Position numbers and translations under genes: made by a program. DNA of 64,000 bases. It comes from Ranitomeya imitator (Eukaryota). The stretch covers positions 207,638,001 through 207,702,000 of the forward strand of contig NC_091288.1 in NCBI RefSeq assembly GCF_032444005.1, given 5' to 3'. Positions 32,439-61,872 of this stretch are shown here, one piece after another (position 1 is the first letter of the stretch; the number at the start of each line of letters is the position of its first letter). The notes below the pieces were generated by a model that did no database searches, was not told the DNA's origin, and saw only the letters and a program-made list of their open reading frames with translations.

Positions 32439-35400
32439 TTACTCCGCTTCCTCGGTGCCTTCCAGGACCTCACTAAGCAGCTGGATCTGTCGGCTCATCT
32501 GTGAGGAGAGACTCTCCATCCTCCGCGCCTTCTGGCGCAGCTTGTGCAGCTGTTTGTTGTAGGTCTCTTTGAGTTCCATGTAGCAGTTGTGCTGGTCTCG
32601 GTTTGCGGGGGTCAGCAGCGCTCCGCACCCCATGTGACACATCTCGCTCCAATACTCGCAGCTTTGGCTGTGGTCACCTATGTCTTTCCTCATCACCTGG
32701 GCAGGACATCCATCATTAGTGCAGACCACCAGTCCGAAAGCGCACGACTCTGCGTGTTCCTCGCTCCTCAGCAGAGGGAAGAGGGCTGGGCAGCCATTCT
32801 GCTCGTTAGGACACTGATAATTAAGACAGATACATTGTTATAGACCTTAAAGTGGATTTATCACTGGGAACAAAATATGTATTTTATTACTTGTTGTAAA
32901 TGCCGCTGTTCCCCTGAATCCAGCAGTGTATTTCTTGTCTTCCTGCACCTCTCCATTCCTGAGATAAAACCCTTTCTTCCCTGTATAAATCTAGTCTTTT
33001 AGCCAACTGGGTGTGACCCTTGGAAAGACACCCACAGAGAAGAGTTGGGATCATACAGGGAAGAAGCTGCTACATCGCAACAGAGAGGTAGATGAACAAA
33101 AGAAAAACAACGGATTCAGGAGAATGGCGGCATTTACACCAAATTAAATTTTTTTTTCCATATTTGTGGTAAGTGACAGATCTACTTTAAGGGTTTAAAG
33201 GGGTTGCACAAAATGAAAGAACAAAACATGGCCGCTTTTCTTCTGTCAAGACTGCTCTGCACCTGTTTGCAGTCTCTGAAAGCTCTCTGCAATGGAGCCG
33301 CAAAACCAGACAATCCGTGGAAGGGGTGACGCGGTTTCTGGAAGAAAGCAGACGTGCTTTGGGTTTCATTTCACCGCCATTTTGAAGAACTTTCCTATCA
33401 GTAACTGCAATTATCCTTGGTTAGATCCAATCAGACATTCCAACCTGCTGGCACCGGGGCACAGGGCCATTAAAGGTCATTTCAGACATTTTGTGACAGA
33501 TTAAGTATTTCATTTACACTCTTTTCTAGATCATCACTCTCATTAGATCATGAAGAAGTCTATGGCCGCCTTATCTCCTTTACCTTGACTTGCAGACTGT
33601 TGATTTTCTTCTTCAGCTTATGCATCTGTACATAGAGTTTACCCCTCACTTCAGTTCTACAGCATGGGCAGGTCTGCTGTCTGGGAAAAGCAAGTGCAAT
33701 CAAACAACGGAAATGACCACAATTTACGGTCTGAGAACCATTAAACTGCTTTTTATGGAGCTGATTTTCAAATTTCCATCATAGGAAGTTAACTAAGCTG
33801 GTATTTTTCACGTATTTAAACCAGTAGTAATATCCTATTATGTTTAGGGTAGAGTACACGCTATTTAAAATGACGTTTCTAAAAATAAATAACATCCACC
33901 TGAAGACCCTCGCTCTGTAACAAAGGAAAAATAATAAACCAACAATATACATACCCTCCGTTGATCTGTAACGTCCCACAATGTAAATCCATCTGAAGGG
34001 GTTAAAATATTTTACAGGCAGGAGCTCTGCTATAATGCAGCTGTGCTCGTGCCTGTAAACCCCGGGGAATGAAGGTAATGTAGGTCAATGGCCTATAGTT
34101 ACCTTCATTCTCGGTGATGCGTCCTCTGCTGGATGTCCTCATATGACCTCGAGCCTGGGAACTTTCCTGGAAAGCTCCCAGGCTCGAGTTCATATGAGGA
34201 CATCCAGCAGAGGGCGCCTCACCGCGAATGAAGGTAACTACAGGTCATTGACCTACATTACCTTCATTCCCCGGGGTTTACAGGCACGAGCACAGCTGCA
34301 TTATAGCAGAGCTCCTGCCTGTAAAATATTTTAACCCCTTCAGATGGATTTACATCGTGGGACGTTACAGATCAACGGAAGGTATGTATATTGTTGGTTT
34401 ATTTTTTTTTTGTTACAGAGCGAGGGTGTTCAGGTGGATTGAGAGAGCAATAAAATATTAAAACAACCTGTGTGTTTATTTCATTAAAATACTTTTTAAT
34501 AATGTTTTTTTAACCCTTTCATACAATTGGATTAATAATTGATAGGTGTCATAATTGACACCTCTCCATTATTAATCTGGCTTAATGTCACCTTACAATA
34601 GCAAGGTGACATTAACCCTTCATTACCCCATATCCCACCACTACACAGGAATGGGAAGAGTGGCCAAGTGCCAGAATAGGCGCATCTTCCAGATGTGCCT
34701 TTTCTGGGGTGGCTGGGGGCAGGTGTTTTTAGCCAGGGGGGGGCCAATAACCGTGGACCCTCTCCAGGCTATTAATATCTGCCCTCAGTCACTGGCTTTA
34801 CTACTCTGGCGGAGAAAATTGTGCGGAAGCCCACACCAATTTTCTCCGCCATTTAACCCTTAAATTTATTAGCTAGAGCGCCCAAATTTTGCACATACAC
34901 ACTGCTAACATTAGTAGTGTGGAATATGCAAAAAATGGGGATATGAGATGGTTTACTGTATGTAAACCATGTCTCATCATGTCGGGTTTAGGAAGGAGAT
35001 CGCAAAAGCCGGCAACTGAATTACCGGCTTTAAAGCTATCTCGCGCTGGATGAAATATTAATATATATACATATGTGTCTCACTGACATAATATATATTA
35101 TATATATAGATAGTACATACAGTGGGGCAAAAAAGTATTTAGTCAGTCAGCAATAGTGCAAGTTCCACCACTTAAAAAGATGAGAGGCGTCTGTAATTTA
35201 CATCATAGGTAGACCTCAACTATGGGAGACAAACTGAGAAAAAAAATCCAGAAAATCACATTGTCTGTTTTTTTAACATTTTATTTGCATATTATGGTGG
35301 AAAATAAGTATTTGGTCAGAAACAAAATTTCATCTCAATACTTTGTAATATATCCTTTGTTGGCAATGACAGAGGTCAAACGTTTTCTGTAAGTCTTCAC

Positions 35401-37336
35401 AAGGTTGCCACACACTGTTGTTGGTATGTTGGCCCATTCCTCCATGCAGATCTCCTCTAGAGCAGTGATGTTTTTGGCTTTTCGCTTGGCAACACGGACT
35501 TTCAACTCCCTCCAAAGGTTTTCTATAGGGTTGAGATCTGGAGACTGGCTAGGCCACTCCAGGACCTTGAAATGCTTCTTACGAAGCCACTCCTTCGTTG
35601 CCCTGGCGGTGTGCTTTGGATCATTGTCATGTTGAAAGACCCAGCCACGTTTCATCTTCAATGCCCTTGCTGATGGAAGGAGGTTTGCACTCAAAATCTC
35701 ACGATACATGGCCCCATTCATTCTTTCATGTACCCGGATCAGTCGTCCTGGCCCCTTTGCAGAGAAACAGCCCCAAAGCATGATGTTTCCACCACCATGC
35801 TTTACAGTAGGTATGGTGTTTGATGGATGCAACTCAGTATTCTTTTTCCTCCAAACACGACAAGTTGTGTTTCTACCAAACAGTTCCAGTTTGGTTTCAT
35901 CAGACCATACGACATTCTCCCAAAACTCCTCTGGATCATCCAAATGCTCTCTAGCAAACTTCAGACGGGCCCGGACATCTACTGGCTTAAGCAGTGGGAC
36001 ACGTCTGGCACTGCAGGATCTGAGTCCATGGTGGCGTAGTGTGTTACTTATGGTAGGCCTTGTTACATTGGTCCCAGCTCTCTGCAGTTCATTCACTAGG
36101 TCCCCCCGCGTGGTTCTGTGATTTTTGCTCCCCGTTCTTGTGATCATTCTGACCCCACGGGGTGGGATTTTGCGTGGAGCCCCAGATCGAGGGAGATTAT
36201 CAGTGGTCTTGTATGTCTTCCATTTTCTAATTATTGCTCCCACTGTTGATTTCTTCACTCCAAGCTGGTTGGCTATTGCAGATTCAGTCTTCCCAGCCTG
36301 GTGCAGGACTACAATTTTGTTTCTGGTGTCCTTTGACAGCTCTTTGGTCTTCACCATAGTGGAGTTTGGAGTCAGACTGTTTGATGGTGTGCACAGGTGT
36401 CTTTTTATACTGATAACAAGTTTAAACAGGTGCCATTACTACAGGTAATGAGTGGAGGAAAGAGGAGACTCTTAAAGAAGAAGTTACAGGTCTGTGAGAG
36501 CCAGAAATCTTGATTGTTTGTTTCTGACCAAATACTTATTTTCCACCATAATATGCAAAAAAATGATAAAAAAACAGACAATGTGATTTTCTGGATTTTT
36601 TTTTCTCAGTTTGTCTCCCATAGTTGAGGTCTACCTATGATGTAAATTACAGACGCCTCTCATCTTTTTAAGTGGTGGAACTTGCACTATTGCTGACTGA
36701 CTAAATACTTTTTTGCCCCACTGTATGTTTTTATGTTTTTGGGAGCACATGGATCCATTGTATGTCCGTATGTCGGTTTTGCAAGCCTGCGAGAAAATCT
36801 CGCAGTACGGATGCCATACGGATTACATACGGATGCCATGCGCAAAATACGCTGACACACCCTGCCTACGGAGGAGATACGGACCACTATTTTGGGGACT
36901 TTTCTGCGTATTACGGCCATAAATTACAGACCGTATTTTTATACGCCGAGCGTGACGCCGGCCTTATTACTACATTTTCCCTGATTTTCTCACCTTTTTA
37001 GCCATTGTAAAATGCATTTTCTGCAGAAGATGTGCCCGCAGGAGATCATGACCGGGCACCTGAGCACACCATGGCAGATGGAGCACAGCAGGTCGTCATC
37101 TGGATGTTCTGTAAATATATCTAGATCGTATCCACCTCCCTGAAAACATGGAAGCACCAGAGGCATCAGGTCATTAATACAAGGTCAGCGGGACGGGGAA
37201 GCCATGGACCACATCACAGCCACCCTGCGTCCTGGCTCACGGGGACCTTACAGCTATGATGTTGCCCCCGTAAAAGCCCAAGTACCCACTGGAGACCTTA
37301 AATGTCCCCGGCACACGTCACTCCAGTACATACCAT
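32439..37336 (-). CDS. RNF151: RING finger protein 151 (RING + TRAF-type zinc finger, about 206 aa); exons 37334-37336 (ATG only), 36994-37139, 33584-33680, 32439-32813
   Basis: [57 protein letters not shown] (C3HC4 RING), then [37 protein letters not shown]. Canonical splice sites; ATG|GTATGT donor upstream. Syntenic position between TBL3 and RPS2. The ATG-only exon is the least certain part. Confidence 0.9.
32851..33186. mobile_element. T2/Kolobok-type MITE in RNF151 intron 3
   Basis: TTAA|AGTGGATTTATCAC..GTGACAGATCTACT|TTAA. Confidence 0.75.
35120..36723 (-). mobile_element. Full-length Tc1-like DNA transposon (1604 bp, 207-bp TIRs, TA TSD)
   Basis: TA|CAGTGGGGCAAAAAAGTATTTAG..CTAAATACTTTTTTGCCCCACTG|TA. 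TIRs 35120-35326 and 36517-36723 differ at about 2 positions. Lies in RNF151 intron 2. Confidence 0.97.
35335..36357 (-). CDS. Intact DD34E Tc1 transposase, 340 aa
   Basis: [41 protein letters not shown], with 34 residues between D and E and no stops or frameshifts. Confidence 0.95.
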
Positions 37337-38349: not shown

Positions 38350-41300
38350 TTATTCAGTGTGAAGTTTGAGCGCCATGTGCAGAAATCTCAGCACTGAGGT
38401 TGTTAATGGTCGTCTGAGGAAGGTTCTGCCACACTGAAAGTACTTGGGCAAATCATCAAGATCCTCTGCTGGCAGCACTATGTTATCACCGGTGAATGAC
38501 TCCCCGATGGGAGACAAGTCTGGAGACGCTGCAGCCATGGGAGCAGATTTAGGCCGCGCAGGCTGCTCACTGTAGCACGAGCAACAAGAGGCCCGACGTG
38601 GAGTTTAAAGGGAACTTGTCACCCTCCCCCCCCCAGGCGTTTGAAACTAAAAGCCACCTTGTGCAGCACTAATGCTGCATTCTGTCAAGGTGGCTCTTTT
38701 AGTTCTTGTCCCTGGCAATGCTGAAATAATCGTTTAGATAATTTGTCCCTCATACCTCAAAATTGTCAGGGGGGCAGGGCTTTCCTCCCTTACACAGACG
38801 CCACAGCCATCAGTTACTTCATTTATTCTGGACACCGCCTCCTCAGCGTTGTTATTTACCCGGCGCCTGCGCTAAAATCTTTGTCCTTGGGCATGCGCAG
38901 TTAGCGCTGCCCGTCCAATGACATCACATGAAGTCTTCCTTCTTGCGCCTGTGTGGACGCGTGGCCTGAGATCCCGCCCCGCCGTCTCTTCTGATTTATT
39001 CACACTGTGGGGCTGGGAATCTTGAGGGAGAGCTGCAGATAAGTAGTGTGCATGCCCAAGATTCCCAGCCCAGCAGTGTAAATACATCAGAAGAGACTGG
39101 GGCTGTATCTCAGGCCACGCGTCCACGCAGGCGCAATAATAAAGACATCATGTGATATCAGTGGACGGGCAGTGCTAACTGCACATTCCCAAGGAAACAA
39201 AATTACAGCGCAGGCGCCAGGAAAATGCCATAACGCTGAGGAGACGCCAGGGAGAAATGAGGAAATAACCAGCGGCTGTGGTGCGTCCGTGTAAGGGGGA
39301 AAGCCCTGCCCCCCCCCCCCCCCCCCCCATTTCAAGGTATGAGGGACAAATCATCTGAACTATTATTTCAGCGTTGGCAGGGACGAGAACTAAAAGTCAC
39401 CATGACAGAATGCAGCATTAGTGCAGCACAAGGTGGCTATTACAAACGCCTGGGGGGGGGGGGGGGGGTTGGTGACAGGTTCCCTTTAAAACCAGCTCCT
39501 GTGACAGAAATGGCCGCACTACTGGTTCTACCACCCCGAGGTTAGTGTACCTGGAATGGAGACTACGGGGTTCCAGCTACTGTACATTATTCCACCCAAC
39601 GGCATAAACTCTGGACTGGGACCTCCGTTATTTTCATAGCATTGCCCACAAAGAGGGACACTAACTACTGCTAGTAACCCTACATATTAATGCTACTGAG
39701 CCAATAAGGACTGATCACAGAGCGAGCATATAAAAAAAAAACCTAAAGATTGCTAATAAATTAGTGATAGAAATAGAGCAGTAGCAAACACCGTATTGTT
39801 CAGACGGTAAGGCTTGGTTCCCATTGCGTTAATGGGAAAGCGTTAACGGACAGCGTTGTACGGCGAAATTAACGCCGTGCAACGCGTCCGTTAGCGCGCC
39901 CATTCACGGCAATGGGAGCGCGCAGCACTAGCGCGTGCCATGTTCGGCACGCGCTAGCGACGCGCCGGTGTTTCCTGGCGCGCCGCGGACGCTGCTTGCA
40001 GCGTCCGAGGCGTGCCCGTGGTCCGTTCCCCGCTCTCGCAGATCGGGGATCTGTGAGAGCGGGGACGTTACCGCGACCCGGCCCCATTAAAAACATTGCG
40101 TTAGCACAACCCGCTAGCGCTAAACGGGTTGCACTAACGCAATATGAACCTAGCCTAAGATGCACCACAAGTTCTCAGGAGAAAAAAACTGAACGGGGCA
40201 AGTGGGGTGTTGTTTTAGGCCATGTTCACACGACGAGTTTTTTCAGCAAATTTTCAGCTGTGTTTCACAGTACCAGTAAAGTCTGAGATTTCAGAAATCT
40301 GATGCATACACCTTTTTTACCCCGTTTTGTCAGAGCTGCATTTTTGCAAAATTCAGCATGTCACTATTCAGGTTTTGCTGCGTTTATGGTGTCAGAACCT
40401 GATGAAGTAGAATGCGATTAGTTTATGCACTAAACTTTATCAGCATGCACGAGAAACTTACCCCGGAAAAGCAACAATTATAACACAGCAAAACCTGCTT
40501 TTTGTAAGCAGCCTAAATTTTGCATAAAAACACAATGTGAGAACATAGCCTAAAGGTACCTTCACACATAACGATATTGTTAACGATATCGTTGCTTTTT
40601 GTGACGTAGCAACGATATCGTTAAGGAAATCGTTATGTGTGACAGCGACCAACGATCAGGCCCCTGCTGGGAGATCGTTGGTCGCTGAATAAAGTCCAGA
40701 ACTTTGTTTCGTCGCTGGATCTCCCGTGGACATCGCTGGATCGGCGTGTGTGACACCAATCCAGCGATGTCTTCACTGGTAACCAGGGTAAACATCGGGT
40801 AACTAAGCGCAGGGCCGCGCTTAGTAACCCGATGTTTACCCTGGTTACCATCCTAAAAGTAAAAAAAACAAACAGTACATACTTACCTACAGCCGTCTGT
40901 CCTCCAGCGCTGTGCTCTGCACTCCTCCTGTACTGGCTGTGAGCGTCGGTCAGCCGGAAAGCAGCAGACGTCACCGCTCTGCTTTCCGGCCGCTGTGCTC
41001 ACAGACAGTACAGGAGAGCAGAGCACAGCGCTGGAGGACAGACGGCATTAGGTAAGTATGTACTGTTTGTTTTTTTTTTACTTTTAGGATGGTAACCAGG
41101 GTAAACATCGGGTTACTAAGCGCGGCCCTGCGCTTAGTTACCCGATGTTTACCCTGGTTACCGGCATCGTTGGTCGCTGGAGAGCGGTCTGTGTGACAGC
41201 TCTCCAGCGACCCGGATCGTTGTCGGTATCGCTGCAGCGTCGCTTAATGTGAAGGGGCCATTACACTCCGAATTTAGCTTACCAGTGGAAAGGAAGGGGG

Positions 41301-41563
41301 GTGTGGACGACACTACAGGGTGATGGCGCGAGAGCCATCCCAGCCTGGAAAAAGGGGGTGTTCAGCAATGCAGAGATCTTACAATGCCGCTTCCTCAATT
41401 TCCATAACCCTACAACTTGTCCTTCTTGGTGATGCAATGTCAATGCTCTGACATGTATACAGTCAAAGGTTTTGGCACAGACTGTTGAGAACCAAACCAA
41501 TGTGATGAACTTATTTTTTGTTAGAGCACAGATAAGTCTGCTGCCTCGCTCATACAGGACCAT
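38350..41563 (-). CDS. Candidate uncharacterized two-exon ORF, about 166 aa (41283-41563 + 38350-38569)
   Basis: 93 open codons end at a TG|GTAAGC donor and are phase-compatible with a ctacAG|T acceptor followed by 72 open codons. The TAA stop overlaps AATAAA (38349-38354). No homolog recognised. Confidence 0.4.
38609..39485. mobile_element. T2/Kolobok-type MITE with long internal inverted repeats
   Basis: TTAA|AGGGAACTTGTCACC..GGTGACAGGTTCCCT|TTAA. Confidence 0.85.
39811..40155. mobile_element. PIF/Harbinger-type MITE
   Basis: TAA|GGCTTGGTTCCCATTGCGTT..AACGCAATATGAACCTAGCC|TAA. Confidence 0.8.
40218..40550. mobile_element. PIF/Harbinger-type MITE
   Basis: TTA|GGCCATGTTCACAC..TGTGAGAACATAGCC|TAA. 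Confidence 0.7.
40554..41260. mobile_element. PIF/Harbinger-type MITE with internal palindromes
   Basis: TAA|AGGTACCTTCACAC..TGTGAAGGGGCCA|TTA, with internal GGTAACCAGGGTAAACATCGGG inverted repeats. Confidence 0.75.
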
Positions 41564-41965
41564 GGGCCTTACGGTAACTAATCAGTAGCAGGTAATGAAA
41601 ACCACAGTTCACTGCCATTTATATACAGCAGTAAGTCCTAAAGCTCCTGTTATTCAGCCTTCGTTATAGGTGTACGTTTATGAATACCCCCCCCCCCCCA
41701 ATAGGATGGCACAGTATATATATATCCCCTCCTTGTTCCATTCCCCCAATGCTTTGCTCCGCTGTGCAGCGTGTGGACTGACTCGGCACAGCAGGTACAA
41801 GCTAGTGACATTGTGCCTGCTGCACTGAGACCCGGACGCTCCGCTGAATGCTGCCGCATGAAGCCAACTGTTCCACCACTGAATTAATCTGAGCACTGAG
41901 GCCTCATGTCCCAGGTCTGTTTTATGGTATATTGAAATACAATTAAACCTTTATTGTCAAATTCA

Positions 41966-42997
41966 TCAAGTTTCAGCAAAGACTGAATATGTACAGCGTT
42001 GCCCCTCATTTTTTAGGACTTCTGCGATTCGCTCGGGCATGCTGGATATCAGTTTCTGGGCCAATTCCTGAGTGACTGCAGCCCATTCTTCCCTAATCAG
42101 TGTTTGGAGCTTATCATGACTTAGGTCTTTTTGTTCGGCCACCTGCTTTTTGAGGATTGACCACAGGTTCTCAATGGGATTAAGATCTGGAGAATTTCCT
42201 GGCCATGAATCCAGAATTGCGATGTTTTGCTCACTGAGCCACTCAGTCACCAGTTTTGCCTTGTGACATGGTACACCATCATGCTGGAAGATGCATTGGT
42301 CCTCACCAAATTGTTCCTGGATGGTTGGGAGAAGCTGCTCTTTGAGGAGTGTTAGATAACATTCTTTATTCATGGCTCGGCTCCGAGGCAAGATGGTAAG
42401 CGAGCCCACCCCCTTGGATGAAAAGCAACCCCACACATGAATGGTCTCAGAATGATTTACTGTAGGCATGAAACCGGCCTCAGGGAAGCCCTCGCCACTT
42501 CTCTGAAGCGTCATTCTTCCAGATACCCCCAACAGTCTAAAAGACGCTTCATCAGAGAAAATCACTTTCCCCCAGTCCTCTGCAGTCCAATCCCTGTACT
42601 TCCTGCAGAATGCCAGCCTGTCCTCCATGTTTTTCGTGGAGAGAAGTGGCTTCTTTGCTGTTTTTTTCGTCACTAACCCAGCCTCTAAAAGCCTTCTCCT
42701 CACTGTGCGAGCAGAAGCACTGACCCCTGCCTGCTGCCATTCCACAGCAAGCTCTGCGCTGGTGTTAAACTGATCCTCTTGACGGATTTTCTTTAGGAGA
42801 CTGTCCTGGGACTTGCTAGACTTTCTTGGGCGCCCTGAAGCCTTTTTCACAGCAATTGAACCGCGCTCTTTGAAGTTCTTGATGATTCGATAAATGGTTG
42901 ATTTAGGGGCTAGCATACAAGCGGCAATGTCCTTCATTGACAATCCCTTTTGATGCAAAGCAATAATGTCTGCACGCGTTTCCTTAGAGGTAACCAT
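41966..42997 (-). CDS. Intact Tc1/mariner DD35E (Traveler-type) transposase, 343 aa, no TIRs visible; candidate domesticated gene
   Basis: Uninterrupted [46 protein letters not shown], with 35 residues between the second D and the E. GCCATGG Kozak context. AATAAA at 41950-41955 just past the stop. No CAGT..-type inverted termini or TA duplication seen on either side. Confidence 0.9.
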   Translation of the reverse strand: MVTSKETRADIIALHQKGLSMKDIAACMLAPKSTIYRIIKNFKERGSIAVKKASGRPRKSSKSQDSLLKKIRQEDQFNTSAELAVEWQQAGVSASARTVRRRLLEAGLVTKKTAKKPLLSTKNMEDRLAFCRKYRDWTAEDWGKVIFSDEASFRLLGVSGRMTLQRSGEGFPEAGFMPTVNHSETIHVWGCFSSKGVGSLTILPRSRAMNKECYLTLLKEQLLPTIQEQFGEDQCIFQHDGVPCHKAKLVTEWLSEQNIAILDSWPGNSPDLNPIENLWSILKKQVAEQKDLSHDKLQTLIREEWAAVTQELAQKLISSMPERIAEVLKNEGQRCTYSVFAET

Positions 42998-43364
42998 GGC
43001 TAACAAATGACAATTTAAAGCTTCAGCTCCACATTACAGCAACCAGTCTGGTCTAAGAAATTACTCAGCATGAAAGCAATCTCAAGGGCCTTGTCCTAGT
43101 TAACACTTCCTCCAGAGTTAACAAGACCACCACTGGATTGATGTTAGCAGGTCTTTTTGTATATCCCACCCCCGAGACTCCATTGTCAACAGATGATCCG
43201 TGTTATTAACTTTATCCATGATGTTCGCACCTCTGACAGGTGATCGCTGCACATTCTTCTAGCTCAGCGTCCACAAGTCCGGCCCCAACGAGGACTAAAA
43301 TAAAGAAAACAAAGGGTTAGTCAGGTGCAGTCATATGACACACTCCATGTATACACAGCCAGAC

Positions 43365-43496
43365 AAATGTAGGAACACGGGTCTCATTACACGCATATAG
43401 ATTATGGGTAATGAGCTAAATGCTCCAATTCCTGTAGGCACAGAGATCTTACTAAAGGCTACGAAGAGGCCAGAAGTAATTTTCAGTTTGTGCCAA
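43365..43496 (-). ncRNA. SNORA78: H/ACA box snoRNA SNORA78 (ACA64) ortholog
   Basis: Minus strand GGCACA-aACTGAAAAT-tact..agta-AGATC-tcTGTGCC, H box ACAGGA (43430-43435), second hairpin ..GCT-cattac..gtaatg-AGACCC-gtgttcct, ACA box (43368-43370) + 3 nt. Both pockets are 14 nt from their box. The 3' end is 69 nt upstream of the acceptor. Confidence 0.88.
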
Positions 43497-43591
43497 AGTG
43501 ACTAAACCAATATCCCCCAATACAAGTCATGCACAGGACCGCCAAGTGCACCGCCTACAGACATCATATACCAGCCTGTACCCAGACGCTG

Positions 43592-44040
43592 GGGGCCCAG
43601 CCTCCGCCACACGTACCCCCACCCCGGGGCCCAGCCTCCGCCACGCGAACCCCCACCCCGGGGCCCAGCCTCCGCCACGCGAACCCCCACCCCGGGGCCC
43701 AGCCTCCGCCACGCGGACCCCCACCCCGGGGCCCAGCCTCCGCCACGCGAACCCCCACCCCGGGGCCCAGCCTCCGCCACGCGGACCCCCACCCCGGGGC
43801 CCAGCCTCCGCCACGCGGACCCCCACCCCGGGGGCCAGCCTCCGCCACGCGAACCCCCACCCCGGGGCCCAGCCTCCGCCACGCGGACCCCCACCCCGGG
43901 GCCCAGCCTCCGCCACGCGGACCCCCACCCCGGGGCCCAGCCTCCGCCACGCGGACCCCCACTCCGGGGCTCAGCCTCCGCCACGCGAACCCCCACCCCG
44001 GGGCTCAGCCTCCGCCACACGAACCCCCACCCCAGTGCCC
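43592..44040. repeat. GC-rich minisatellite, about 13 x 34 bp, in SNHG9 intron 1
   Basis: Unit CCCCCACCCCGGGGCCCAGCCTCCGCCACGCGRA. Confidence 0.95.
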
Positions 44041-44348
44041 AGCCCCCGCCAGACGTACTACAAAACACTACACACTGGCAGACACAGAAAATCGCCTCTG
44101 TGCAATAAATGGGCCCTTTGCAGTACAGTAGCGCCTCAGAACACAATTCTATCCGCTTTGGCCCAAACTGCACAGATCAAATGTTCACCCCTGCCGTGTG
44201 TGTGTGACCAGTAAATGTAGGAACCCCTTAAAAATAGTTTAACTGCCCCACACACACTTCTAACACCCACCATACTGCCCCTCTCCACCAACAATCACCC
44301 CCATCATCGCTCCCGCAGACTCTCACCTGCACGCGGCTGCACTGAAAG

Positions 44349-44518
44349 GATCCTCGTGGCCCGGTCGCCTCCTTATATCGTTTCCGGATACCAGCCTAGG
44401 ACGTGACGTCATCAGCAGCCAAGCCCCTCCTAGCTGCGCATGCTCGTCCTGGAGCTCCAGCTCTCGCGCTGTTTCGCGGGTATAAGAAGCCCCTTCCGCC
44501 GACTTCCGCCCTTCTAGT
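44349..44518. promoter_or_regulatory. Bidirectional RPS2/SNHG9 promoter (two TATA-like + TCT initiators, ETS/GABP sites, central CRE)
   Basis: + strand TATAAGA at 44481 with initiator TCTTTTTC at about 44517. - strand ATATAAG at 44372-44378 with initiator CCTTTC at about 44349. TGACGTCA at 44404-44411. TTCCG motifs at 44382, 44493 and 44503. CpG-rich. Confidence 0.8.
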
Positions 44519-44532
44519 CTTTTCGACATCAC
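44517..44532 (+). other. RPS2: RPS2 non-coding exon 1 (5'TOP)
   Basis: TCTTTTTCGACATCAC|GTAAGT splices to AG|CAAATG at 48114, giving a leader like the remembered mammalian RPS2 5'UTR (CTTCTTTTCCGACAAAACACCAAATG). Confidence 0.8.
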
Positions 44533-45040
44533 GTAAGTGTGTGCGGCCGGCGGGAGAGTGCGGGGAGGCCGGGCGGTAATCCGCGGATATCGGGGCCATC
44601 CTGCCCGCGGGGCCGCCTGTGTTGGGGTAGTATGAGAGTGTGTCCGCGAGTGGCTGTTTCCATGGTGATATTAGTGGGGGGCTCCCTGTAGTTGTCGCGC
44701 GGGTTCCTGGTCTTTTGTTATCTCCACGTTTAGGAAGCTTCTATTAACCCTTTGCATGCTCTCTGCTTGCTGTCCGTGACTGGACTCCCCCAGGCTGGCG
44801 GCCTCCGGTAACGAGGACCATGTGCTTCTTAGCTGGGGGTTTACACTTTCTGTCTTGAGCCTTTTGTTACAGTGTGTCAGTGCAGGAGGATTCTGCAGCC
44901 TGATGGGGATCTAGGAGTAGCGGCCATTAACTGACAACAAGCAAGTTTGGAAATAATATACCAGAATATATTTTTGGTGGTCTCTTGCAATCTGGGGGCT
45001 GTAGGGGGCGCTGTTCTCCTGCTTTACTCTGTTTAGGCTC

Positions 45041-47971
45041 TGGTTTCTGATGTAGGACCCCCATCCTGTGCTTCTGGCTTCTGATGTAGGACCCCCATCC
45101 TGTGCTTGTGGTTTCTGATGTAGGACCCCCATCCTGTGCTTGTGGCTTCTGATGTAGGACCCCCATCCTGTGCTTGTGGTTTCTGATGTAGGGACCCCCA
45201 TCCTGTGCTTGTGGTTTCTGATGTAGAGGCCCCCATCCTGTGCTTGTGGCTTCTGATGTAGGACCCCCATCCTGTGCTTGTGGTTTCTGATGTAGGGGCC
45301 CCCATCCTGTGCTTGTGGCTTCTGATGTAGGACCCCCATCCTGTGCTTGTGGCTTCTGATGTAGGACCCCCATTCTGTGCTTGTGGCTTCTGATGTAGGG
45401 ACCCCCATCCTGTGCTTGTGGCTTCTGATGTAGGACCCCCATCCTGTGCTTGTGGCTTCTGATGTAGGGACCCCCATCCTGTGCTTGTGGCTTCTGATGT
45501 AGGGACCCCCCATCCTGTGCTTGTGGCTTCTGATGTAGGACCCCCATCCTGTGCTTGTGGTTTCTGATGTAGGACCCCCATCCTGTGCTTGTGGCTTCTG
45601 ATGTAGGACCCCCCATCCTGTGCTTGTGGCTTCTGATGTAGGGACCCCCATCCTGTGCTTGTGGCTTCTGATGTAGGGCCCCCATCCTGTGCTTGTGGCT
45701 TCTGATGTAGGGCCCCCATCCTGTGCTTGTGGCTTCTGATGTAGGGACCCCCATCCTGTGCTTGTGGCTTCTGATGTAGGGCCCCCATCCTGTGCTTGTG
45801 GCTTCTGATGTAGGGGCCCCCATCCTGTGCTTGTGGCTTCTGATGTAGGGGCCCCCATCCTGTGCTTGTGGCTTCTGATGTAGGGACCCCCATCCTGTGC
45901 TTGTGGCTTCTGATGTAGGGCCCCCATCCTGTGCTTGTGGCTTCTGATGTAGGGACCCCCATCCTGTGCTTGTGGCTTCTGATGTAGGGGCCCCCATCCT
46001 GTGCTTGTGGCTTCTGATGTAGGGCCCCCATCCTGTGCTTGTGGTTTCTGATGTAGGGACCCCCATCCTGTGCTTGTGGCTTCTGATGTGGGACCCCCAT
46101 CCTGTGCTTGTGGTTTCTGATATAGGGACCCCCCATCCTGTGCTTGTGGTTTCTGATATAGGGACCCCCCATCCTGTGCTTGTGGTTTCTGATATAGGGA
46201 CCCCCCATCCTGTGCTTGTGGTTTCTGATATAGGGACCCCCATCCTGTGCTTGGGGTTTCTGATATAGGGCCCCCATCCTGTTCTTGTGGTTTATGATAT
46301 AGGGACCCCCATCCTGTGCTTGTGGTTTATGATGTAGGACCCCCATCCTGTGCTTGTGGCTTCTGATGTAGGGACCCCATCCTGTGCTTGTGGCTTCTGA
46401 TGTAGGGACCCCCATCCTGTGCTTGTGGCTTCTGATGTAGGGGCCCCCATCCTGTGCTTGTGGCTTCTGATGTAGGGGCCCCCATCCTGTGCTTGTGGCT
46501 TCTGATGTAGGGACCCCCATCCTGTGCTTGTGGCTTCTGATGTAGGGCCCCCATCCTGTGCTTGTGGCTTCTGATGTAGGGACCCCCATCCTGTGCTTGT
46601 GGCTTCTGATGTAGGACCCCCATCCTGTGCTTGTGGCTTCTGATGTAGGGACCCCCCATCCTGTGCTTGTGGCTTCTGATGTAGGGACCCCCCATCCTGT
46701 GCTTGTGGCTTCTGATGTAGGACCCCCATCCTGTGCTTGTGGTTTCTGATGTAGGACCCCCATCCTGTGCTTGTGGCTTCTGATGTGGGACCCCCATCCT
46801 GTGCTTGTGGTTTCTGATGTAGGACCCCCCATCCTGTGCTTGTGGCTTCTGATGTAGGACCCCCCATCCTGTGCTTGTGGCTTCTGATATAGGGACCCCC
46901 CATCCTGTGCTTGTGGTTTCTGATATAGGGACCCCCCATCCTGTGCTTGTGGTTTCTGATATAGGGACCCCCCATCCTGTGCTTGTGGTTTCTGATATAG
47001 GGACCCCCCATCCTGTGCTTGTGGTTTCTGATGTAGGGACCCCCATCCTGTGCTTGTGGCTTCTGATGTAGGACCCCCATCCTGTGCTTGTGGCTTCTGA
47101 TGTAGGACCCCCATCCTGTGCTTGTGGTTTCTGATGTAGGGACCCCCATTCTGTGCTTGTGGTTTCTGATGTAGGGACCCCCCATTCTGTGCTTGTGGTT
47201 TCTGATGTAGGGACCCCCATCCTGTGCTTGTGGTTTCTGATGTAGGGACCCCCATCCTGTGCTTGTGGTTTCTGATGTAGGGACCCCCATTCTGTGCTTG
47301 TGGTTTCTGATGTAGGGACCCCCCATTCTGTGCTTGTGGTTTCTGATATAGGGACCCCCCATCCTGTTCTTGTGGTTTCTGATATAGGTACCCCCATCCT
47401 GTTCTTGTGGTTTATGATATAGGGACCCCCATCCTGTGCTTGTGGTTTATGATGTAGGGACCCCCCATCCTGTGCTTGTGGCTTCTGATGTAGGGACCCC
47501 CATCCTGTGCTTGTGGCTTCTGATGTAGGGGCCCCCATCCTGTGCTTGTGGCTTCTGATGTAGGGGCCCCCATCCTGTGCTTGTGGCTTCTGATGTAGGG
47601 GCCCCCATCCTGTGCTTGTGGCTTCTGATGTAGGGCCCCCATCCTGTGCTTGTGGCTTCTGATGTAGGGACCCCCATCCTGTGCTTGTGGCTTCTGATGT
47701 AGGGCCCCCATCCTGTGCTTGTGGCTTCTGATGTAGGGGCCCCCATCCTGTGCTTGTGGTTTCTGATGTAGGACCCCCATCCTGTGCTTGTGGCTTCTGA
47801 TGTAGGGCCCCCATCCTGTGCTTGTGGCTTCTGATGTAGGGACCCCCATCCTGTGCTTGTGGCTTCTGATGTAGGGGCCCCCATCCTGTGCTTGTGGCTT
47901 CTGATGTAGGGCCCCCATCCTGTGCTTGTGGTTTCTGATGTAGGGACCCCCATCCTGTGCTTGTGGTTTCT
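45041..47971. repeat. Minisatellite, about 84 x 34-36 bp, in RPS2 intron 1
   Basis: Unit CTGATGTAGG(G)ACCCCC(C)ATCCTGTGCTTGTGGYTT; source of the spurious 188-740-aa ORFs. Confidence 0.97.
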
Positions 47972-48116: not shown

Positions 48117-51839
<3,723 letters not shown>

Positions 51840-58819: not shown

Positions 58820-59240
58820 CCTTGACATAGCTCGTGTTGATGTGGCATCTTGGATGAGCTGCACTACCTGAGAAACTCCTGTTGGTTGTAGACACCGCCT
58901 CATGCTACTGTACCTCTAGGGGTGAGAGCAATGATAACATGTAAAAGTAACCAAAACAGCCAAAAAGAAAGAACAGAGAAATGGTCTGTGGTCACCCCCT
59001 GCAGATTCACTCCTTTATAGGAGCTGTCTTGCTAATCGTCTATCATTTCTACCTGTTGTCGGTTCCATTTGTACAACAGCAGGAGAAATTGATTCACAAT
59101 CTGTGATACTTCGCAACTGGACAGGTTGATTTCACCGAAGTTTGAGTGACTTGGAGGTACTCTGTTGTTTAAGTGTTTCCTTTATTTTTTTTTTTTTTAA
59201 AGCCGTGTATGCTATACCTCCCATAGGCAGACTGCATATA

Positions 59241-60875
59241 CAGTTAGGGCCAGAAATATTTGGACAGTGACACAAGTTTTGTTATTTTAGCTGTTTACAA
59301 AAACATGTTCAGAAATACAATTATATATATATAATATGGGCTGAAAGTGCACACTCCCAGCTGCAATATGATAGTTTCCACATCCAAATCGGAGAAAGGG
59401 TTTAGGAATCATAGCTCTGTAATGCATAGCGTCCTCTTTTTCAAGGGACCAAAAGTAATTGGACAATGGACTCTAAGGGCTGCAATTAACTCTGAAGGCG
59501 TCTCCCTCGTTAACCTGTAATCAATGAAGTAGTTAAAAGGTCAGGGGTGGATTCCAGGTGTGTGGTTTTGCATTTGGAAGCTGTTGCTGTGAGCAGACAA
59601 CATGCGGTCAAAGGAACTCTCAATTGAGGTGAAGCAGAACATCCTGAGGCTGAAAAAAAAGAAAAAATCCATCAGAGAGATAGCAGACATGCTTGGAGTA
59701 GCAAAATCAACAGTTGGGTACATTCTGAGAAAAAAGGAATTGACTGGTGAGCTTGGGAACTCAAAAAGGCCTGGGCGTCCACGGATGACAACAGTGGTGG
59801 ATGATCGCCGCATACTTAATTTGGTGAAGAAGAACCCGTTCACAACATCAACTGAAGTCCAGAACACTCTCAGTGAAGTAGGTGTATCTGTCTCTAAGTC
59901 AACAGTAAAGAGAAGACTCCATGACAGTAAATACAAAGGGTTCACATCTAGATGCAAACCATTCATCAATACCAAAAATAGACAGAAAAACACCTCAAGA
60001 AGCCAGCTCAGTTCTGGAAAAGTATTCTATGGACAGATGAGACAAAGATCAACCTGTACCAGAATGATGGGAAGGAAAAAGTTTGGAGAAGAAAGGGAAC
60101 GGCACATGATCCAAGGCACACCACATCCTCTGTAAAACATGGTGGAGGCAACGTGATGGCATGGGCATGCATGGCTTTCAATGGCACTGGGTCACTTGTG
60201 TTTATTGATGACATAAGAGCAGACAAGAGTAGCCGGATGAATTCTGAAGTGTACCGGGATATACTTTCAGCCCAGATTCAGCCAAATGCTGCAAAGTTGA
60301 TTGGACGGCGCTTCATAGTACAGATGGACAATGACCCCAAGCATACAGCCAAAGCTACCCAGGAGTTCATGAGTGCCAAAAAGTGGAACATTCTGCAATG
60401 GCCAAGTCAATCTCCAGATCTAAACCCAATTGAGCATGCATTTCACTTGCTCAAATCCAGACTTAAGACGGAAAGACCCACAAACAAGCAAGACCTGAAG
60501 GCTGCGGCTGTAAAGGCCTGGCAAAGCATTAAGAAGGAGGAAACCCAGCGTTTGGTGAGGTCCATGGGTTCCAGACATAAGGCAGTGATTGCCTCCAAAG
60601 GATTTGCAACAAAATATTGAAAATAAAAATATTTTGTTTGGGTTATGTTTATTTGTCCAATTACTTTTGACCTCCTAAAATGTGGAGTGTTTGTAAAGGA
60701 ATGTGTACAATTCCTACATTTTCTATCAGATATTTTTGTTCAACCCTTCAAATTAAACGTTACAATCTGCACTTGAATTCTGTTGTAGAGGTTTCATTTC
60801 AAATCCAATGTGGTGGCATGCAGAGCCCAACTCGCGAAAATTGTGTCACTGTCCAAATATTTCTGGCCCTAACTG
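59241..60875 (+). mobile_element. Tc1-like transposon with frameshifted DD34E transposase (59602-60620), about 35-bp TIRs, TA TSD
   Basis: TA|CAGTTAGGGCCAGAAATATTTGGACAGTGACACAA..TTGTGTCACTGTCCAAATATTTCTGGCCCTAACTG|TA. The ORF is split by a small deletion near 59985 (..PFINTKNRQ / KKPAQFWKSILWTDETK). Confidence 0.93.
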
Positions 60876-61872
60876 TACATCACATAGGAGACTGGGACTG
60901 CTGTATATACTTCCCATAGGAAGCTAGTACTATTGTATATACAAAATGGGGACAGACTGCTCTATATACCTCACATAGGAGGCACTGAGACTGCTGTATA
61001 TACATCACATGAGGACACAGACTGCTATATTTTACATGTAAAGCACAGTGGAATAAAAGTCGCTATAAGAATAATATAGCTCATATAGGAGACACCTTGA
61101 CTGCTGTATATACACAGCACATAGGAGATACTGGTGCTGGGGTATATATCATGAGCAACGGGCTGTGGCATACATGTCACAAGTATGTTCTGCACTGACT
61201 TGTGTCTGGATGTAATATTTTACTGCGTGCGCCGCATTGTTCAGTAGTGATGCTCTGTGCTCGCAAAGCAAGAAGACATTAAAAGGGCCAGCAGCCATCA
61301 AACTGCAGCAGCTGGCCTGAGCACTGCGGTCCCTGGGAATCTCCTGGAGGACAGGTAATCGGCCTGGGGACCCGAGGTTCCCGTCCCCTGTCCTAGGTGC
61401 TCACTGCTGAATTTACATTTTAGAACCCAGAATGGGCAGTGACAAGGTATTTAGCCTTAGTAATAAATTAGAGCCTCACAGACGTCATTTTTACATAGAA
61501 GCCAACCTGGATTGTTAATCATGTTACTAACAGGACATGGATTATAAGCGTCTAAGTGCAGTCATGCTGTGGATTTTGAGATTGCAGCAATAAGATGACG
61601 TCCCAAGGACTTGTTCACATGTGAAAATTTGAGTTGTATTTGTGAGAAAGCAAATTAATAGATGCATAAACCATAAGAGGAAAGACGCCTTCCTTCAGTG
61701 CTCGTGGTCCTCGGTGTTCATCCTAATCTGCAGGAGTTACTTTCTGCTAACTCTCCTCGGTGAAAAGGGCGAAATCCACAACAAATTAACATGAAGCAAA
61801 ATCTGCAGCTCAGGTCGACTTAATTCTGTAACTAGGATAATATCTGCTCGCTGGTGCCGGTCATAGGAGTAA

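Follow-up and report, generated by a model that had tools for sequence, protein, structure and literature searches.

A probable domesticated transposase of the Traveler lineage in the last exon of a SNORA78 host gene of Ranitomeya imitator

What keeps an intact transposase open reading frame (ORF) in the last exon of a gene whose intron carries a small nucleolar RNA (snoRNA)? We analyzed a 64,000-nucleotide stretch of the Ranitomeya imitator genome (assembly GCF_032444005.1, contig NC_091288.1, positions 207,638,001 to 207,702,000 of the forward strand), hereafter called the window, in which such an ORF is part of a SNHG9-like gene that carries SNORA78 in its intron and lies beside RPS2. All coordinates below are positions in the window. 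The transposase ORF is intact, can no longer move, is single-copy and is retained at the orthologous position in other species, as part of the terminal exon of the transcript that hosts SNORA78. The best reading of this ORF is a probable domesticated transposase, to which we give a probability of roughly 0.55. Loss of the terminal inverted repeats (TIRs), conserved synteny, single copy and expression, by which domestication is commonly judged, are all found at this locus, together with partial signs of selection.

The ORF, with its stop, occupies 41966-42997 on the minus strand. Its 343 codons run without an internal stop from an ATG at 42997, in the start context GCCATGG; the last codon ends at 41969 and the TGA stop is 41968-41966. 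A Pfam scan matched HTH_Tnp_Tc3_2 (3.5e-17), DDE_3 (7.4e-13) and several weaker helix-turn-helix (HTH) families, with HTH_SB below the cut-off. The predicted protein is laid out as HTH1 (residues 4-47), GRPRK (residues 55-59; 42821-42835), HTH2 (residues 67-136) and a DDE domain (residues 145-290), the catalytic residues of which are D149 (42551-42553), D240 (42278-42280) and E276 (42170-42172). The second D and the E are 35 residues apart, one residue more than in the aligned catalytic domain of Sleeping Beauty SB100X (5CR4, E 4e-39), and this extra residue is the difference between DD34E and DD35E. The ORF, the Pfam matches and the 5CR4 alignment bear out the uninterrupted 343-residue Tc1-family ORF with DD35E, GRPRK and GCCATGG that had been proposed from the letters alone (the sequence-only reading).

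Traveler, a DD35E family of Tc1/mariner elements originally reported from Salmo salar (Zong et al. 2020, PMC7093834), ranges over ray-finned fish, anurans and squamates (PMC7093834). Its characteristic features, a transposase of about 340 residues with a paired-like double HTH motif, GRPR, DDE_3 and a DD35E triad, are all present in our ORF. The TGA stop of the family reads TCA here, which adds six C-terminal residues. An AlphaFold2 model of the ORF protein, built with 32 family sequences, has a mean predicted local distance difference test (pLDDT) score of 83.6 and folds into an RNase H-like core plus two DNA-binding domains of three helices each. Among PDB structures, it matches the Mos1 transposase (transpososome) and SB100X best.

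Is the ORF part of an RNA? RNA-like sequencing runs were matched to the window by word share, and contigs assembled at k=31 were then aligned to it. Terminal exon 2 of the SNHG9-like transcript, as delimited by these contigs, is 41920-43294 on the minus strand (about 1.37 kb). Nineteen small runs of an organism designated A contained about 55% of the sampled words of 41900-44400, which equals the fraction of that stretch made up by exon 2. For exon 2 alone the word share was 0.86-0.99 in the runs, and high shares were found across seven studies. Contigs of four RNA-like runs from four studies span exon 2 including the ORF: 41938-43296 with no mismatch in X3, 41763-43288 in X5, 41729-43262 in X8 and 41920-43287 in X20. 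In these runs exon 2 had a depth of 44-138 and the intron (43297-44326) a depth of about zero, so the exon 2 signal cannot come from genomic DNA. These exon-restricted contigs and a poly(A) tail, seen over four studies, establish expression as RNA.

The ends of this RNA are informative as well. In X20, 18 T's precede 41920 on the plus strand, which is the poly(A) tail of a minus-strand RNA, and in one contig an RNA 5'-adapter sequence is joined at 43287 in minus-strand sense. Poly(A) addition takes place at about 41920-41938, in agreement with the site near 41930 that had been predicted, and longer forms reach 41729-41763. The likely signal is AATAAA at 41950-41955 (minus strand), 10 nucleotides past the stop. 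Since it aligns with a CAATAAA motif in three of four aligned family elements, it is transposon-inherited, and the host RNA is polyadenylated at a signal that the transposon brought with it. This AATAAA and a second one inside the ORF (42365-42370) had both been pointed out before and both are present.

At the other end, the predicted acceptor at 43294 coincides with the 5' boundary of the RNA, and so the ORF does lie in a polyadenylated minus-strand RNA as the sequence-only reading supposed. The mismatch-free X3 contig ends at 43296, two bases past this acceptor; exon 1 and the intron both end in AG, and spliced and unspliced forms would therefore branch at 43296 in an assembly graph. Contig ends at 43287-43296 thus fit the acceptor at 43294 and splicing from the predicted exon 1, although this fit is not proof. 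An alternative acceptor next to the ATG had also been suggested, and its sequence is indeed present at 42999; contigs are continuous from 43296 through 42999, showing that a long-leader form exists. This leader comprises the 297 nucleotides of 42998-43294 (minus strand). The several upstream AUGs anticipated in it number five (43254, 43219, 43183, 43071 and 43034), two of them in good context. A joint 42071->42147 in one RNA-like run was considered as splicing and rejected: it is also found in a DNA run and reflects deleted paralogous copies. Beyond the main poly(A) site, contigs covering 41300-41691 at a depth of 10-22 were found in two RNA-like runs; these may stem from the host transcript reading through, or from a 5' exon of the RNF151-like gene described below.

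Can the element still move? Five related elements were retrieved for comparison, among which L002 is full length (1571 nucleotides) with terminal repeats that begin TACAGTCATGGCC. The transposon-derived segment at our locus, 41918-43160 on the minus strand, is the internal part of a Traveler-like element, with 75-79% nucleotide identity to elements L001-L006 by blastn. Homology to these elements stops at 43160 and at about 41918, and about 178 nucleotides of the 5' end and about 85 nucleotides of the 3' end, including both TIRs, are missing from the segment. A search for inverted repeats around the ORF found none. The family TIR had no match with three or fewer mismatches in the whole window, and local alignments of both element ends to the ORF flanks scored no better than shuffled sequence. 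The TIRs of 13-68 bp and the TA target-site duplication of mobile Traveler elements are therefore absent from the locus, in line with the TIR-less copy first suggested. With both TIRs lost, this copy cannot move, and it combines the loss of mobility hallmarks with retention of the ORF.

An ordinary mobile or recent Traveler copy, its TIRs and TA duplication having been overlooked, could be expected to have an intact ORF, and the family is indeed multicopy in the genome, with intact anuran copies on record (PMC7093834). This explanation is nevertheless very improbable in view of the negative TIR and end searches, the 21-25% nucleotide divergence of the ORF copy from full-length elements, and the presence of the same insertion in two other species at about 91% identity, which we describe below.

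How old is the ORF in relation to the elements of the genome? The closest database proteins are fish transposases at 70-72% identity, the highest value against any database protein being 72-73%, with a transposase-like protein of Salmo salar third in rank at 71%; one predicted protein of Ranitomeya imitator matches at 68%. An exact-sequence look-up of the ORF in the assembly collection gave no match. A maximum-likelihood tree places the ORF as sister to a crown clade of 19 Traveler proteins (99/96), with 90/50 at the joining node. Its end branch is 0.26 long, against roughly 0.05-0.15 within the crown clade. Protein divergence from every crown member is 27-28%, and the ORF has dozens of unique replacements at sites where the aligned fish copies and the Ranitomeya copy all agree. 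The Traveler identity given by the sequence-only reading is supported by the DD35E triad and the motifs, but the tree puts the ORF beside the crown clade and not clearly inside it.

In a DNA run of organism A, 2576 contigs piled up on the conserved core of the ORF (42119-42937). Most were less than 90% alike and many were internally deleted, indicating that Traveler-like elements are abundant in the genome of organism A. By contrast, the DNA contigs of the locus itself had a depth of 8-9 over the ORF, similar to the 11-16 of unique flanks. Six sites at which the multicopy contigs differ from the window were listed, three synonymous and three replacement. At the two comparable replacement sites, W213 and K288, the multicopy contigs carry the family-consensus residue, and at the third, A129T, they match neither the window nor the consensus. 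The expected divergence of the ORF from the multicopy Traveler elements, and its single-copy depth, were therefore confirmed. Single copy and conserved synteny are both found here, the former as read from k-mer depth alone and the latter in two closely related extra species. The ORF is an old, diverged relative of the elements that now populate the genome and does not belong to their recent burst. Traveler has been described as a very recent invader with thousands of copies in some anurans (PMC7093834), and the pile-up in organism A resembles the account of one toad given there, though only as a resemblance. An RNA-like run of organism B (X23), which shares its study with the runs of A and C, gave no contig anywhere on the stretch, the Traveler core included, where organisms A, C and D gave tens to thousands. 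Organism B may lack the whole Traveler family, or a filter may have dropped its contigs.

Is the same insertion present in other species? In RNA-like contigs of organisms C and D, the ORF is joined at either end to flanking sequence from outside the transposon, namely 43227-43295 upstream and 41780-41917 and 41579-41684 downstream. Because the ORF is joined to the same flanks in both, the insertion is orthologous. The ORF itself shows 75 mismatches over 822 nucleotides and 82 over 897 nucleotides in these two organisms, without any gap (about 91% identity). Its surroundings have fared differently. The 3' untranslated region (UTR) has at least 29 mismatches over 186 nucleotides together with clustered small deletions, 106 other letters stand in place of a 95-nucleotide stretch of it, and the piece that follows aligns over 106 nucleotides with 4 gap letters. 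The organism C transcript is without the leader stretch 43049-43226 (178 nucleotides); the joint 43048->43227 does not have GT-AG ends, and the deletion takes out three of the five upstream AUGs. The organism D alignment also stops at 43048. Over 43339-43491, the SNORA78 region, organism C has 3 mismatches (98% conservation).

Counted as events, at least six indels occurred in the approximately 565 nucleotides of non-ORF exon and none in the ORF, where about nine would be expected (P ~1e-4). Substitutions amount to about 9% in the ORF and 14-16% in the UTR, a ratio of about 1.5 (p ~0.01-0.02). CpG hypermutability was considered as a source of the UTR divergence and rejected, with CpG at 2.4% in the ORF and 2.7% in the flank. 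Of the expectation that related frogs would carry the same locus, this much is borne out: the insertion is shared by two other species, and the compared parts of the ORF have no indels there, in contrast to the flanking UTR. On the assumption that the UTR diverged neutrally, a neutral ORF would have taken about 80 substitutions per lineage and would have about a 3% chance of having no stop; in simulation, the probability of no stop after 80 neutral substitutions was 0.034, with indels uncounted. Within organism A, the ORF variants comprise three synonymous and two replacement changes, and both indels found lie outside the ORF.

A longer time scale is covered by a branch test of the ORF against the consensus of the five family elements. 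The two differ by 86 synonymous and 111 replacement changes, with a synonymous divergence (dS) of 0.545 and a replacement divergence (dN) of 0.157, and their ratio (omega) is 0.29 (Fisher p = 1.6e-14). Omega is low in every part of the protein, from 0.20 in the C-terminus and 0.22 in HTH1 to 0.26 in GRPR and HTH2 and 0.32 in the catalytic domain. Changes also avoid deeply invariant sites, 4 of 58 of which are altered (F156L, R164L, R165Q and P291D) against 86 of 276 other sites (p = 6.5e-5). These values show that most of the ORF branch evolved under transposase-like constraint, be it as an active transposon, at this locus or both. Of the selection proposed for the ORF, the branch part stands with its omega of 0.29, and the ortholog part rests on the zero gaps and on the 9% against 14-16% divergence.

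One simple possibility is that a transposon fragment was exonised into a non-coding snoRNA host RNA, which owes its terminal exon and poly(A) signal to it, and that the ORF has escaped disruption through chance or for want of time, with no protein function under selection. A snoRNA host gene is typically non-coding, with exons that tolerate insertions, mouse Snhg9 is regarded as a long non-coding RNA (lncRNA) (PMC10688608), and the five upstream AUGs of our leader would suit such an RNA. The very many Tc1 copies of the genome lead one to expect some intact ORFs by chance, the contrast in substitutions is modest (about 1.5-fold), and a single-nucleotide gap in the orthologs, discussed below, may fall within the ORF. 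Against these points stand the zero indels over 822-897 nucleotides of ORF beside at least six in the neighbouring exon, the position of both within-species indels outside the ORF, the probability of about 0.03 for a neutral ORF without a stop even before indels are counted, and the avoidance of deeply invariant sites. We consider this explanation, a passively exonised relic without a selected function, to be rather unlikely.

Several observations weigh against domestication. The low omega of the long branch may be largely older than the insertion and date from the time of the active transposon, and the within-species variants are too few to test anything. Organisms C and D share nearly all of their differences from A and so amount to one independent comparison. 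This comparison consists of mismatch and gap counts, and the C and D ORFs may contain stops. The contrast in substitutions between ORF and UTR is modest and suggests, as an estimate from the alignments, an omega of about 0.5 since the species split. One 1-nucleotide gap common to C and D is unplaced within 41780-42180; it probably belongs to the cluster at 41811-41822 but could lie in the last roughly 70 codons of the ORF. On the RNA side, the run type is a guess, although the poly(A) tail and the lack of intron coverage speak for it. The junction of exons 1 and 2 is a prediction, a 23-nucleotide exon being too short for k=31 contigs. The protein product is predicted only, and upstream AUGs in good context precede it. 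A domesticated transposase remains, on balance, the reading that we prefer.

What could such a protein do? The recognition helices of both HTH motifs, GRPRK and the basic linker are nearly the same as in the family consensus, for which reason nuclear entry and binding to Traveler repeats should persist, and the DDE triad is intact. The most altered segment is a basic loop of residues 158-179 that follows the first catalytic Asp and has lost two deeply conserved arginines. It is also the sole internal stretch of the model that is poorly predicted, and we take it to be equivalent to the clamp loop of SB and Mos1. With low confidence, we favour on these grounds a TIR-binding regulator or competitor of Traveler over a fully active transposase. 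Impaired synapsis or transposition is probably nearer to the truth than full transposase activity.

Another possibility is that the locus is a fixed, immobile source of active transposase that mobilises Traveler copies in trans and has driven the Traveler expansion. The intact triad and recognition helices and the catalytic-domain omega of 0.32 would allow this, a DNA run contains thousands of Traveler-like contigs, and a constitutive promoter of the ribosomal-protein type would presumably supply transposase broadly. However, an immobile copy gains nothing from transposition, so that selfish selection cannot keep its ORF open, and a constitutive transposase would be harmful to the host. R164L, R165Q and the loss of several other basic residues fall in the low-confidence loop after the first Asp, and the crown transposases, whose TIRs the protein would need to recognise, differ from it by 27-28%. 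We therefore judge an active source in trans to be improbable.

The course of events under domestication would be as follows. An old Tc1 copy of the Traveler (DD35E) lineage would have landed, in the sense direction, in the final exon of the gene that hosts SNORA78. Both TIRs have been lost, and the transposase ORF and its own AATAAA are now the 3' part of a polyadenylated host transcript. The ORF has remained open and without indels as the surrounding UTR decayed, presumably because the host maintains it as a protein-coding gene. The host RNA would thereby be bifunctional, with a snoRNA from the intron and an mRNA from the exons. The predicted protein has most likely kept its ability to enter the nucleus and to bind terminal repeats of the Traveler type. 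It may thus regulate thousands of Traveler copies, probably by repressing or competing with them. The proposal in its full extent is that an anuran host has kept a whole Tc1-type transposase, with DNA-binding and catalytic modules both constrained, in a gene that yields both a snoRNA and an mRNA from a ribosomal-protein-type promoter, and that this protein likely controls the Traveler population of the genome. We put it forward tentatively, with somewhat less than even confidence.

The host gene itself has the features that were first read from its sequence, including the TATA motif, the predicted 23-nucleotide exon 1 with its GT donor, the intronic SNORA78 and the acceptor at 43294. Its promoter region, presumably active in both directions, is shared with RPS2 and occupies 44350-44510, with the SNHG9-like gene leaving on the minus strand and RPS2 on the plus strand. 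A TATA-like motif of the SNHG9-like gene lies at 44371-44379 (minus strand) and the TATAAG of RPS2 at 44481-44486 (plus strand). Between these two opposed TATA boxes, at 44404-44411, there is a palindromic sequence resembling a cAMP response element (CRE), TGACGTCA. A scan of the promoter region for bacterial-type promoters and terminators was uninformative. The predicted exon 1 (44327-44349, minus strand) is 23 nucleotides long and non-coding, has a pyrimidine-rich start, CCTTTC, like that of a terminal oligopyrimidine (TOP) transcript, and is followed by a GT donor at 44326-44325.

The host-gene intron (43295-44326, minus strand) carries SNORA78 and a 34-nucleotide tandem repeat. SNORA78, an H/ACA snoRNA, was identified at 43365-43491 (minus strand) by its Rfam family ACA64 with 72.9 bits against a gathering score of 35, in a full-length match with the H and ACA boxes aligned. 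On its 3' side, a CTAAC motif, a pyrimidine tract and an AG acceptor set the start of exon 2 at 43294. The SNHG9-type arrangement, with SNORA78 in the intron of a short spliced gene beside RPS2, is thus present. The 34-nucleotide repeat is G+C-rich and lies upstream of SNORA78 at 43592-44051 in 13.5 copies with 95% matches; it creates long artefactual ORFs on both strands.

The gene order RPS2, SNHG9-like gene, RNF151-like gene, as given by the sequence-only reading, is real on the evidence of the RPS2 exons and a RING exon. The non-coding exon 1 of RPS2 (44511-44532, plus strand) has a pyrimidine-rich start and a GTAAGT donor at 44533, and the coding exons begin at 48117 (plus strand). Most of RPS2 intron 1 is occupied by a 35-nucleotide tandem repeat (45041-47971, about 84 copies, 2.9 kb), which yields spurious ORFs of up to 740 residues. 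A further snoRNA, SNORA64, lies in an RPS2 intron at 50507-50643 (plus strand). On the other side, 36990-37166 (minus strand) is the first coding exon of a RING-finger gene, the RNF151-like neighbour (Pfam zf-C3HC4, 1.2e-8). The exon codes for the N-terminal half of a C3HC4 RING, and it follows the SNHG9-like gene downstream in the same orientation. This exon was found by listing ORFs and scanning them with Pfam; a pattern search for a RING within one exon had no match. Its RNF151 name is our assumption from the N-terminus of the human protein. In the human locus, SNHG9 is head-to-head with RPS2 and RNF151 is a neighbour, and the order of RPS2, SNORA78 host and RING gene found here presumably agrees with this mammalian arrangement.

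Two other Tc1 copies in the window had been reported to have TIRs, and both do, with arms of 132 and 57 nucleotides. They share 29-33% protein identity with the ORF. The copy at 35115-36728 belongs to a different family (33% protein identity to the ORF), has perfect 132-nucleotide TIRs and lies just downstream of the RNF151-like RING exon. Its tblastn-matched transposase frame (35338-36336) is without a stop, and this copy is possibly active. The third Tc1 copy (59236-60880) has 57-nucleotide TIRs at 86%; its transposase matches in two separate pieces and is probably frameshifted. Downstream of the host gene there is also a palindromic structure at 40778-41162, with 91-nucleotide perfectly complementary arms and nested shorter hairpins, which resembles a miniature inverted-repeat transposable element (MITE) or a foldback element.

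How does this locus compare with known systems? Domestication of a transposase by exonisation is of a known kind; it is the host context that is unusual here. SETMAR is the Hsmar1 mariner transposase captured by a SET gene in primates. Like our ORF, it is a transposase of the Tc1/mariner superfamily that is fixed at one locus, immobile and transcribed in a host gene, and the TIRs of its source family, which are its binding sites, are dispersed through the genome. SETMAR differs in being a fusion spliced onto host coding exons and in having an altered triad, whereas the frog locus has no fusion, a 23-nucleotide non-coding exon 1, an intact triad and a snoRNA host lncRNA as its setting. From Traveler elements proper the locus differs in having neither TIRs nor a TA duplication, in its position as sister to the crown clade, and in being single-copy and orthologous in several species.

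Mouse Snora78 is flanked by Snhg9 exons, and Rps2 is a nearby gene (PMC10688608). The frog gene shares with mammalian SNHG9 the position of SNORA78 in the intron of a short two-exon gene beside RPS2, but the mammalian gene makes a short non-coding RNA and the frog exon 2 is about 1.37 kb long with a transposon ORF of 343 codons. In Drosophila, genes derived from Tc1/mariner elements, such as CG14478, which keeps an intact DDE domain, have been described (PMC13548663). Loss of TIRs and target-site duplications, synteny, expression and purifying selection, the criteria applied to those genes (PMC13548663), are the same as those considered here. Co-option of both the DNA-binding and the catalytic module in one Tc1/mariner derivative is stated not to have been observed (PMC13548663), in contrast to the branch omega of 0.2-0.3 that we find for both modules of the frog ORF. 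In our literature search, neither a domesticated frog Tc1 transposase nor a coding SNHG9 turned up.

We know of no domesticated vertebrate transposase of the Tc1-proper (DD35E) type. If the ORF is merely a relic, the locus is an ordinary exonised transposon. If it is translated and selected, it adds a Tc1-proper (DD35E) transposase to the short vertebrate list of domesticated Tc1/mariner genes. It would then be a case of whole-transposase co-option, stated to be unobserved for Tc1/mariner elements (PMC13548663), and one in which a non-coding snoRNA host gained a protein in a single step through the transposon's own ORF and poly(A) signal. The protein would also be a testable candidate regulator of Traveler, which has expanded to thousands of copies in some anurans (PMC7093834). 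The locus further implies that the arrival of the Traveler lineage in anurans predates the invasion described as "very recent".

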